Origin: Pelomyxa schiedti
Lineage: Eukaryota; Protista; Evosea
Reading direction: 5' to 3'
Assembly: GCA_020536535.1 (NCBI GenBank)
Contig: JAHLWZ010000832.1
Span: 26,954 to 90,953, forward strand
Length of the DNA: 64,000 bases
Of the stretch, positions 23,231 to 24,492 are shown one piece after another. The notes under the pieces are model-generated. The model was not told the origin of the DNA. It did no database searches and saw only the letters and a program-made list of their open reading frames with translations. The position numbers and the translations under genes are program-made. Every line of letters begins with the position of its first letter. Position 1 is the first letter of the stretch.

Positions 23231-23302
23231 TGGCCCCGCTCAGAATCGAACTGAGATCAAGAGAGCCAAAATCTCCCATACTAACCATTATACTACGGAG
23301 GT
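23231..23302 (-). tRNA. trnQ-TTG: tRNA-Gln(TTG), rebuilt downstream of a retroelement insertion; positions 1-2 are mismatched
   Basis: Minus strand ac-CTCCG TA GTAT AATGGTTA GTAT G GGAGA TTTTGGC TCTCT TGAT CTCAG TTCGATT CTGAG CGGGGCC A folds as a cloverleaf with A and B boxes. The first two nt (AC) come from the element instead of the original GG. Confidence 0.9.
23281..23300. repeat. Target-site duplication, copy 1 (20 bp)
   Basis: ctaaccattatactacggag, identical to 24471-24490. Flanking bases differ on both sides. Confidence 0.97.
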
Positions 23303-23511
23303 TAAGCCCACACAAACGGCAGGCGTGTGTTGAAATTATTACTGAAAAACAGTGAAGCGGGGGGGCTTCTAGTGTACTGTGGATGGCGTGGATGTTTGTG
23401 CGGTGTGCTTGACTGCTACGCGGTGGTTGTGTGGTTATGGTGAGGCTGCTACATTATGTGTGTTACTGATCAAAGGCGGTTATGCGATGGTCCGGGTCTT
23501 CTCCCCGGTGT

Positions 23512-24237
23512 TTATGGAGGGTGGTAGATGTGATTGGGAGGGATCACAGCTTCCAAGTCAATCTTCGATTGAGTTGGAAGACCAACGTTCCTCCTTAATT
23601 CGAGCAGGGCCAAATTTTGGGGCAGGGTTGACACGTGGTAGTTGTATAAGCCTACCAGATTCCTAGCGGCGGATTTAGCGGAGTTCGGGGTGTTAGGTGT
23701 GACATTCAGAGTCTTCAGGGAGTTTAACCGGAGCTCCTTGCGGATTGCAGCGTTATGGCGGCATGTGTTGAGGATGTGCTTGACCGATTCCGGGGAATTG
23801 CAGCCGTGCCGGCATGTTGAGGCGATGTGGAGGATGTGGGACATGCGGTTATTCAGGGGCTTCATGCCGGTTGCAATTTGGAGAGCGTGGTTCCGCAGGG
23901 TTGGAGGGATTCCCTTGGTGTTGAGGTTCTTGACCAGGTTGATCCAGTGAGCCGCTGTTGGTTTCTCTGTCATTGTGGTCCGAAGCTTGTGATGCAGGGA
24001 TTTTCCCGGGCGTTCGTCCAGGATTGCCCTGTAAATGTCAGTGGGGTTCCTGAGAGTCGGTGGAATCTTCTCATTGAACGTGTGGATTAACTGCAGTGGG
24101 GAGGTAGGTAAGACCTTCTTCGGGTCTGTGCGGTTTGGATGCCTGAGGGCCGACACGGCGGTGGCAACATTCCACCAAGCCATGTCCAGCAGGGGGGTGG
24201 CAAAGCCACCCCCAGGGAGGGAATGGAATGACGACAT
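23512..24237 (-). CDS. C-terminal part of a LINE ORF2 (post-RT region with zinc knuckle)
   Basis: 241-aa ORF with LPGGGFATPLL and CRHGCNSPESVKHILNTC. An upstream, frameshifted segment (WETT...NNNSILSSTLYSILST) resembles the L1/Tx1 RT thumb. Confidence 0.8.
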   Translation of the reverse strand: MSSFHSLPGGGFATPLLDMAWWNVATAVSALRHPNRTDPKKVLPTSPLQLIHTFNEKIPPTLRNPTDIYRAILDERPGKSLHHKLRTTMTEKPTAAHWINLVKNLNTKGIPPTLRNHALQIATGMKPLNNRMSHILHIASTCRHGCNSPESVKHILNTCRHNAAIRKELRLNSLKTLNVTPNTPNSAKSAARNLVGLYNYHVSTLPQNLALLELRRNVGLPTQSKIDLEAVIPPNHIYHPP

Positions 24238-24382
24238 TTGTAGATAAGATAGAGTAGAGGGTTGAGGATAGAATAGAATTGTTGTTTGTCAAGTTTTTAA
24301 TGCTTGGTAAACTGGTTGTTGGTTTGTCTTTGGCTGTTTTAAGGCTGTCGGACATTGTTGTTTCCCAGGTCGATTTGGGGAA

Positions 24383-24457
24383 GGTGGTCACGCCCGGGAT
24401 CGATCCCACAACCTCTCAGTTTTCGCGATTTCAGACGAACGCCTTAAACCGCTAAAC
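24383..24457 (-). other. tRNA-derived mosaic at the 5' junction of the retroelement
   Basis: GTTT-AGCGGTTTA-AGGC (D arm), TTCGT-CTGAAATC-GCGAA (anticodon-like arm), AA-CTGAG-AGGTT-GTGGG-ATCGATC-CC (tRNA nt ~37-62) and CCGGG-CGTGACC-A-CC (3' T-stem and acceptor strand). Confidence 0.65.
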
Positions 24458-24470
24458 AAAAAGGTCTCCC

Positions 24471-24492
24471 CTAACCATTATACTACGGAGCC
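24471..24492 (-). pseudogene. Original 5' end (nt 1-22) of the interrupted tRNA-Gln; includes TSD copy 2 (24471-24490)
   Basis: GGCTCCGTAGTATAATGGTTAG. Its GGCTCCG pairs fully with the CGGGGCC acceptor strand at 23232-23238. Confidence 0.92.

Follow-up and report, generated by a model that had tools for sequence, protein, structure and literature searches.

How a stretch of tRNA-like sequence comes to lie between the broken-off 5′ part of a tRNA-Gln gene and a fragment of a LINE retrotransposon is the question raised by a locus in the 64,000-nt stretch of Pelomyxa schiedti DNA analysed in this work (the window). A first, sequence-only reading of the 88 nt concerned had described them as a cap made of several tRNAs, put together by serial jumps of the LINE reverse transcriptase (RT) onto mature tRNAs in the course of this insertion, or as the head of a nascent tRNA-headed SINE. 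In kind, as a small-RNA/LINE chimera of the U6-L1 type, the locus was read rightly; the extent and the origin of the captured RNA are to be seen differently. With a probability of roughly 0.7, the element is a bipartite chimeric retrocopy which consists of a 5′-truncated LINE and a copy of a separate non-coding RNA of about 347 nt, found in front of LINE fragments elsewhere in the genome.

Structure of the insertion

The element occupies 24470-23301 of the minus strand and is set within a tRNA-Gln(TTG) gene, as can be read directly (Table 1). The same 20-bp sequence, CTCCGTAGTATAATGGTTAG, stands on both of its sides (minus strand 24490-24471 and 23300-23281), equals nt 3-22 of the tRNA-Gln(TTG) gene and is therefore a target-site duplication (TSD). 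The GGCTCCG of the 5′ tRNA fragment pairs with the 3′ acceptor strand CGGGGCC of the downstream tRNA copy. The latter begins with AC, not GG, as the LINE end replaces nt 1-2 (23301-23302); according to Rfam, two acceptor pairs are broken or unpaired, and the 'regenerated' gene is therefore not intact.

Table 1. Features of the window locus (positions of the window), flanks and LINE joints of the head copies (joints on a common LINE-A scale) and 3′ ends of the LINE subfamilies.
Feature	Position	Strand	Remark
Target tRNA-Gln(TTG), 5′ fragment, nt 1-22	24471..24492	-	Holds TSD copy 1 (24490-24471); direct reading
TSD copy 2	23281..23300	-	Direct reading
Head, nt 1-263 of the recurrent 347-nt non-coding unit	24208..24470	-	Equals family consensus
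tRNA-like 5′ part of head, 88 nt	24383..24470	-	Best host match tRNA-Val(CAC)
A-box-like TAGCGG	24449..24454	-	Same as host tRNA-Val(CAC)
B-box-like palindromic GGGATCGATCCC, A at tRNA position 54	24396..24407	-	
T5 run, head nt 9-13, would-be Pol III terminator in the host	24458..24462	-	Direct reading
Head/LINE joint, ~3 nt (GGT) assignable to either side	24208..24210	-	Overlapping BLAST ranges
5′-truncated LINE-A: C-terminal part of RT ORF (stop 23512) and 3′ UTR ending GTGTGGGCTTAAC	23301..24210	-	
Downstream tRNA-Gln(TTG) copy, from nt 3 on	23231..23302	-	ARAGORN; Rfam 46.8 bits
Upstream flank, C258			tRNA-Gln nt 1-22
Upstream flank, C4844			tRNA-Leu(CAA) nt 1-27
Upstream flank, C821			tRNA-Glu(TTC) nt 1-10
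Upstream flanks, C4458, C530, C819			Non-tRNA or unrecognised sequence
Joint, C711	LINE ~779		
Joint, C258	LINE 805		
Joint, C821	LINE ~1020		
Joint, window	LINE 1039		Head cut at nt ~263
Joint, C4458	LINE 1221		
Joint, C2312	LINE 1326		
Joint, C819	LINE ~1364		
Joint, C729	LINE ~1680		
LINE subfamily A			3′ end CCGTTTGTGTGGGCTTAA
LINE subfamily B			3′ end CCCCGACGTGTGGGCTTAA

The motifs that had been described for the 88 nt are all there. Directly after the TSD stands GGGAGA, equal to nt 26-31 of the target tRNA, followed by a D-arm-like segment (TAGCGGTTTAAGG), an anticodon-like arm with a stem of 4-5 bp and an 8-nt loop (CTGAAATC) and a T-loop of the A54 type, whose flanking strands GTGGG and CCGGG do not pair and after which CGTGACC-A-CC follows. 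LINE-like coding sequence had been placed immediately behind, from 24382 on, but homology to the LINE begins only at 24210 (element nt 261), and the preceding 175 nt are a non-LINE continuation of what is called the head below. At the joint the BLAST ranges of head (1-263) and LINE (261-1168) overlap, and in L036 LINE-A is read without interruption. From 24210 to 23303 the LINE part is 99.7-100% identical to copies on C1183, C659 and C806; the reading frame on C659 contains RVT_1, and LINE-A has in addition a weak match to zf-RVT.

The partner LINE

The LINE occurs as two subfamilies, A and B, both of which end in GTGTGGGCTTAA with 1-6 extra nt and lack a poly(A) tail. As read at the junctions of the window (23231-24492), L012 (C791), L020 (C597), L022 (C1380), L090 (C2312), L092 (C821) and L095 (C729), these LINEs adjoin tRNA genes at nt ~3-5, once at -6 (C821), always in the orientation of the tRNA, the targets being Gln, Pro(AGG), Ser(TGA), Glu(TTC) and others. 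In C791, tRNA-Gln nt 3-21 separate the end of a LINE-B from a 5′-truncated LINE-A that comes next, a tandem insertion of the sort that arises because the duplication re-creates the target site. Longer relatives on C900 and C644 show endonuclease matches beside RT matches, with more endonuclease matches on C966 and C2667, and, whereas the nearest proteins of all are those of Pelomyxa schiedti itself (97-99% identity), the nearest ones outside the species, a Tx1 element among them, have endonuclease, RT and zf-RVT domains. This suggests an L1/Tx1-like LINE. A literature search returned no paper connecting Pelomyxa schiedti with retrotransposons.

At L036:8909-8975, L038:2482-2550 and L039:2807-2910, LINE 3′ ends adjoin a T-arm-like GGTTCGATT or GTGGGATCAACTCCCAC with a T-run. 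ARAGORN calls no tRNA at these three places, where tRNA genes of unusual or permuted structure may lie; the L039:2807-2910 sequence has its 5′ part in common with the upstream flank of the head copy on C819.

Recurrence of the head

The sequence-only reading had proposed to count the genomic copies that carry the same head. A 126-nt query spanning the 5′ joint of the window, searched against the 52-Mb Pelomyxa schiedti assembly, finds the 5′ end of the head at six further loci (C530, C4458, C4844, C258, C819 and C821), which together with the window makes at least seven. Every 5′-complete copy opens with GG(G)GAGACC under flanks that are unlike each other, so that GGGAGA belongs to the inserted sequence; what had been taken for a copy of nt 26-31 of the target tRNA is the partner RNA's own 5′ end. 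The number of G residues at this start varies from 2 to 5 between copies, which would agree with additions made without a template or derived from a cap.

Four copies (window, C530, C4844 and C2312) are identical to the consensus; C4458 and C258 diverge from it by ~2%, C821 by ~5% and C819 by ~7%. A cap assembled by jumps during the insertion in the window would be unique to it, but the identical arrangement recurs in at least seven loci, copies diverged by 5-7% included, and is thus older than this insertion. In the oldest copy, C819 (L006:1500-1815), 7 of 23 CpG positions are changed, all as C>T or G>A, compared with 14 of 293 non-CpG positions, which suggests a CpG-specific decay, perhaps due to cytosine methylation, in Pelomyxa schiedti. 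The tRNA-like 5′ part is the CpG-rich part of the head and diverges faster than the 3′ half; functional constraint on the better-conserved 3′ half was considered and rejected, as CpG decay accounts for the quicker divergence of the tRNA-like part.

A search of the assembly recovered no stand-alone gene of the 347-nt unit, all copies with a visible 3′ end being chimeras. In the sole candidate for a source gene, C530, an assembly gap cuts the head after nt 120, and the sequence beyond it shows no relation to either LINE or head. Two 22-nt words of the head, looked for as exact matches in metagenome contigs, gave 0 matches.

Two side observations concern the edges of the head. A DNA contig of run X1 matches the flank of the C4458 copy (L003:1-121) up to the first base of the head and then continues with other sequence; it may be an empty-site allele, in which case the C4458 insertion could be polymorphic in the sequenced material. 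Further, head nt 1-14, GGGAGACCTTTTTG (window 24470-24457), resemble the head's own last 14 nt, GGAGGTTCCTTTTT (nt 334-347, L003:455-468), and also nt 26-38 of the tRNA-Gln anticodon arm, GGGAGATTTTGGC (window 23277-23265), a likeness that may be due to chance or be the trace of an older joint.

Joints between head and LINE

The full unit, nt 1-347, is seen in C4458, C258, C819, C821 and C2312, where it extends 84 nt beyond the point at which it is cut in the window. Its 3′ end is formed by a CCUCC/GGAGG hairpin followed by TTCCTTTTT with its T5, and LINE sequence in the same orientation follows directly upon this T5, from a start point that is different at each locus. Seven of the eight joints have the identical head end (...GGAGGTTCCTTTTT / ...TTCCTTTTT), the window with its internal joint at nt ~263 being the exception, while on one LINE-A scale (L039:861-2806) all eight differ in position. 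Microhomology amounts to 0-1 nt at the joints of the head 3′ end and to ~3 nt at the internal joint of the window. Two heads are 5′-truncated, C711 keeping the last 48 nt and C729 the last 44 nt, as is expected if the cDNA enters the head at its 3′ end and sometimes stops early.

Wherever head nt 179-347 occur, they are joined to the C-terminal half of the LINE frame or to the 3′ UTR. The LINE tails, ~270 nt to more than 1100 nt in length, come from two subfamilies which are ~67-71% alike, and the heads on both are 96-100% alike over nt 179-347. Whole chimeras are enclosed by duplications, of 20 bp for the window copy and of 16 bp for C821, and 5/14 of the LINE 3′ ends for which the locus was read, about a third, carry the head. 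Taken together, fixed head ends, occasional 5′ truncation, variable LINE ends and independence of the subfamily are the hallmark of a separate RNA to which copying proceeded from the LINE RNA.

Were the head instead the LINE's own 5′ UTR, the copies would be internal-deletion derivatives such as RIME from ingi or NARTc from L1Tc, a reading to which the missing separate source gene and the frequency of the head on LINE 3′ ends would lend themselves. Internal deletions do not, however, readily give a left breakpoint fixed at the end of T5 in 7/8 copies beside a right one that varies, nor one head on two subfamilies only about 70% alike. Among the copies found, none runs on into ORF1, endonuclease or other upstream LINE coding sequence, the endonuclease-bearing LINE contigs C900, C966, C2667 and C644 have no match to the head, which weakens the derivation further, and the RNA contig described below covers the head only. 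We regard this origin as improbable.

A conventional tRNA-derived SINE family, with head, body and LINE-derived tail amplified from master copies, appears more improbable still. It would account for the A-box-like and B-box-like motifs common to head and tRNA-Val(CAC), for a tail that provides the LINE 3′ recognition end and for a consensus-identical head in four loci; eight different joints, however, mean that no chimera has visibly been copied again, the tails vary over the range given above, and the 347-nt unit has no LINE-like 3′ end of its own. Since no two chimeras have a joint in common, a SINE family with one constant LINE tail has not arisen so far, and of the proposed nascent tRNA-headed SINE only a modified form, taken up in the Discussion, can be retained.

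Relationship to tRNAs

The likeness of the head to tRNAs was assessed with 63 distinct host tRNA sequences. The best local match scores 30, compared with a maximum of 27 in 200 shuffles, and the best local matches are to the V-loop and T-arm of tRNA-Ile(TAT) (18/20) and to the D-arm of tRNA-Leu(AAG) (13/14). The best end-free global match is tRNA-Val(CAC), with 49/72 identical positions (5′ half 22/27) and a score of 56, the maximum of 1000 shuffles being 55; this score reaches only the 5th percentile of cross-isoacceptor similarity among host tRNAs, and the alignment needs a 2-nt and a 7-nt insertion (~9 nt in the head). Head and tRNA-Val(CAC) both have the unusual T-loop GGGATCGA, and TAGCGG followed 30-60 nt on by GGGATCGANNCC is confined, genome-wide, to three tRNA-Val(CAC) genes and five head copies (control 0). 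The A and B boxes that the sequence-only reading had expected at the front of the element are present as tRNA-like motifs, GGGATCGATCCC agreeing at 10/11 positions with GGTTCGANNCC, which we take to be the B-box consensus. The tRNA likeness is modestly more than chance, real but weak.

A tRNA fold is no longer discernible. The Rfam tRNA model RF00005 does not match the head at E<=10, ARAGORN calls no tRNA in it at thresholds of 100% or 90%, and a call at 80% was discarded as a spurious composite of target tRNA and head. No cloverleaf is predicted; the minimum-energy fold of the first 107 nt is a long hairpin (z = -1.8), and folding of the whole head gives z = -0.7. Rfam searches with the window region and five full head copies recover the flanking true tRNAs only and no family that matches the head; an HDV-like ribozyme at the head 5′ end, considered as a candidate, found no Rfam support either.

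Serial jumps of the RT onto several mature tRNAs, giving a mosaic cap in this very insertion, would explain why the best host tRNA differs by segment, with Val-CAC for the 5′ half (22/27), Phe-GAA for the anticodon loop region (14/17, by eye) and Ile-TAT for V-loop and T-arm (18/20), and why Val-CAC genes lack the CC that here stands behind the discriminator base. One decayed tRNA would, however, give the same picture when the best of 63 tRNAs is chosen for each segment; the captured RNA has 347 nt and not ~88 nt, and a single decayed Val-CAC-like tRNA fits its front at least as well as three tRNAs. The third tRNA predicted for the mosaic, starting with GGTCACG, is missing: in the whole genome no host tRNA has a GGTCACG...CGTGACC acceptor, the matches being fewer than in the control and not tRNA-like. 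As to the trailing CC, which had been thought to be part of a CCA end, Val(CAC) genes are followed by ACTTTT and the CC is accordingly not genomic, but this says little, since the match is too distant. GGGAGA moreover opens all copies regardless of the target, and the recurrence of the head refutes a mosaic made in this event. The simplest origin would be from one Val-like tRNA that decayed but kept its box motifs; that the ancestor of the unit arose long ago as a mosaic is a different proposal, and a far weaker one.

In eukaryotes, an A at tRNA position 54 is usually a feature of initiator tRNAs. Both elongator tRNA-Val isoacceptors of the host, CAC (L040:988-1059) and TAC (L082:669-741), have A and not T at this position (GGGATCGA).

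The head in RNA libraries

Four public runs of one study contain the head, two of them DNA and two single-cell RNA libraries (X3 and X4). In X3 a single 323-nt contig covers head nt 1-321 at ~15x; mapped to C4458, the RNA depth is zero over the upstream flank and zero over the LINE part, and the DNA runs cover flank, head and LINE part, the LINE part most deeply. Contaminating DNA would favour the LINE part, and the head is therefore probably present as RNA alone, of which assembled contigs cannot prove ends or strand. X4 adds one adaptor-bounded 131-nt fragment within the head.

The box motifs and the hairpin-U5 end suggest an origin by Pol III, predicted from such signals, and this is contradicted by internal T runs, T5 at nt 9-13 and T4 at nt 264-267, which make Pol III transcription doubtful. 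Of 109 distinct host tRNA genes, 18 have a T4 and 30 a T5 as their first T-run downstream (48/109), these being the commonest terminators, and an internal T5 is found in only 1/109. This one gene, intron-containing and with a tRNA-Ile(TAT) body (L082:812-902 (-) as against L086:809-899 (-)), has the anticodon loop CTTTTTA and not CTTATAA, the pair differing almost only in this loop; ARAGORN reads it as Lys(TTT), and it could be an anticodon-shifted copy or a pseudogene.

Discussion

The observations can be ordered by the following mechanism. An endonuclease-type, tRNA-gene-specific LINE would nick the tRNA-Gln gene near nt 2/3, reverse transcription would be primed on the 3′ end of the LINE RNA and, after ~908 nt had been copied, the cDNA would go on to a second, separate RNA and reach its 5′ end; cleavage of the second strand 20 nt downstream would then give the 20-bp duplication. 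This second RNA would be a discrete non-coding molecule of ~347 nt which starts with GGG(G)AGACC and ends in a hairpin and UUCCUUUUU, its predicted ends as RNA being GGGGAGACC and CCUUUUU, and its first ~90 nt would probably be derived from one tRNA, closest to Val-CAC, with the boxes kept and the tRNA fold lost. We infer that the switch mostly takes place onto the exact 3′ end of the second RNA and that in the window copy it was internal, at nt ~263.

The two RNAs could also have been joined beforehand, an RNA ligase of the RtcB or tRNA-ligase type linking the 3′ end of the head RNA to the 5′ end of a broken LINE RNA and the chimera being copied in one pass. In human U6/L1 chimeras, such ligation has been demonstrated experimentally (PMC6789731); the head resembles U6 in ending with U5, and microhomology of 0-1 nt at the head 3′ end suits ligation as well as end-to-end jumping. 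The joint of the window, internal and with ~3 shared nt, would on the other hand require that the head RNA had been cut, and agrees slightly better with a switch guided by microhomology. Prior ligation seems rather unlikely to us on the whole, even if template jumping by the RT and joining of the RNAs both fit the joints and nothing discriminates between them.

Comparison with known systems places the chimeric retrocopies of Pelomyxa schiedti in familiar company. In the stringent SINE/LINE model, a head that resembles a tRNA and has promoter-box motifs must be linked to the 3′ end of a partner LINE, and a tRNA-like head with box motifs, joined to a LINE 3′ end, is what is found here; unlike in tRNA-derived SINEs, the chimeras have no fixed joint and form no family from one fusion, and the head has lost the cloverleaf and contains internal T5 and T4 runs. 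Mammalian U6/L1 chimeric retrocopies unite a small RNA of full length, with a U-run at its end, with a 5′-truncated LINE at variable positions and are flanked by a TSD (PMC4476161; PMC6789731), and the Pelomyxa chimeras likewise combine the same orientation, variable LINE positions and one TSD round the whole. Their partner, in contrast, is not a known snRNA (no Rfam family) and has no source gene found in the assembly, their LINE is specific for tRNA genes and without poly(A) tail, and they make up a large share of the insertions (5/14 LINE 3′ ends read).

WEIRD-MGL (MINE) of Magnaporthe grisea, with a non-coding RNA of unknown function in front of variable 3′ parts of a LINE and tens of independent bipartite copies, which have been explained by template switching of the RT (PMC2104539), corresponds to the Pelomyxa elements in the fusion of a non-coding RNA to variable lengths of the LINE 3′ part. 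It differs in its host, a fungus and not an archamoeba, in that the Pelomyxa partner has a tRNA-like 5′ part with A-box/B-box motifs and a hairpin-U5 end, and in that the Pelomyxa LINE is site-specific. TRE5 and TRE3 of Dictyostelium, on the other hand, are amoebozoan LINEs which also use tRNA genes as landing sites, but these lie ~50 bp upstream or ~100 bp downstream of the gene (PMC5006619; PMC6101501), whereas the Pelomyxa LINE inserts inside it at nt ~3 (once at -6); these two papers describe no captured head RNA for the TREs.

The finding thus adds a new lineage and a site-specific LINE to the chimeric retrocopies of a known kind; the partner RNA may be tRNA-derived. Chimeras made by LINE RTs have been documented in mammals and a few fungi (PMC2104539; PMC4476161), and the Pelomyxa elements would extend them to the Amoebozoa and to a stringent, site-specific LINE without poly(A) tail. 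For genome annotation, the 'tRNA-like cap' is to be treated as a repeat module and not as a damaged host tRNA gene. Since about a third of the LINE 3′ ends read bear the captured RNA, which has promoter motifs of the tRNA type and for which the search for a source gene was negative, the locus family is a usable natural system for the question of how tRNA-headed SINEs gain LINE tails.

More tentatively, the 347-nt unit may itself be a tail-less proto-SINE, derived from tRNA-Val, with its own internal promoter and terminator. Lacking a LINE recognition end, it would spread solely through being joined afresh, by template switch or ligation, to a piece of LINE RNA in each round. Every chimera could then serve in its turn as a source gene, which would explain both the absence of a dedicated gene and the joints that are all different. 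If true, this would display the birth of a SINE before fixation of its tail, on a LINE that targets the interior of tRNA genes.
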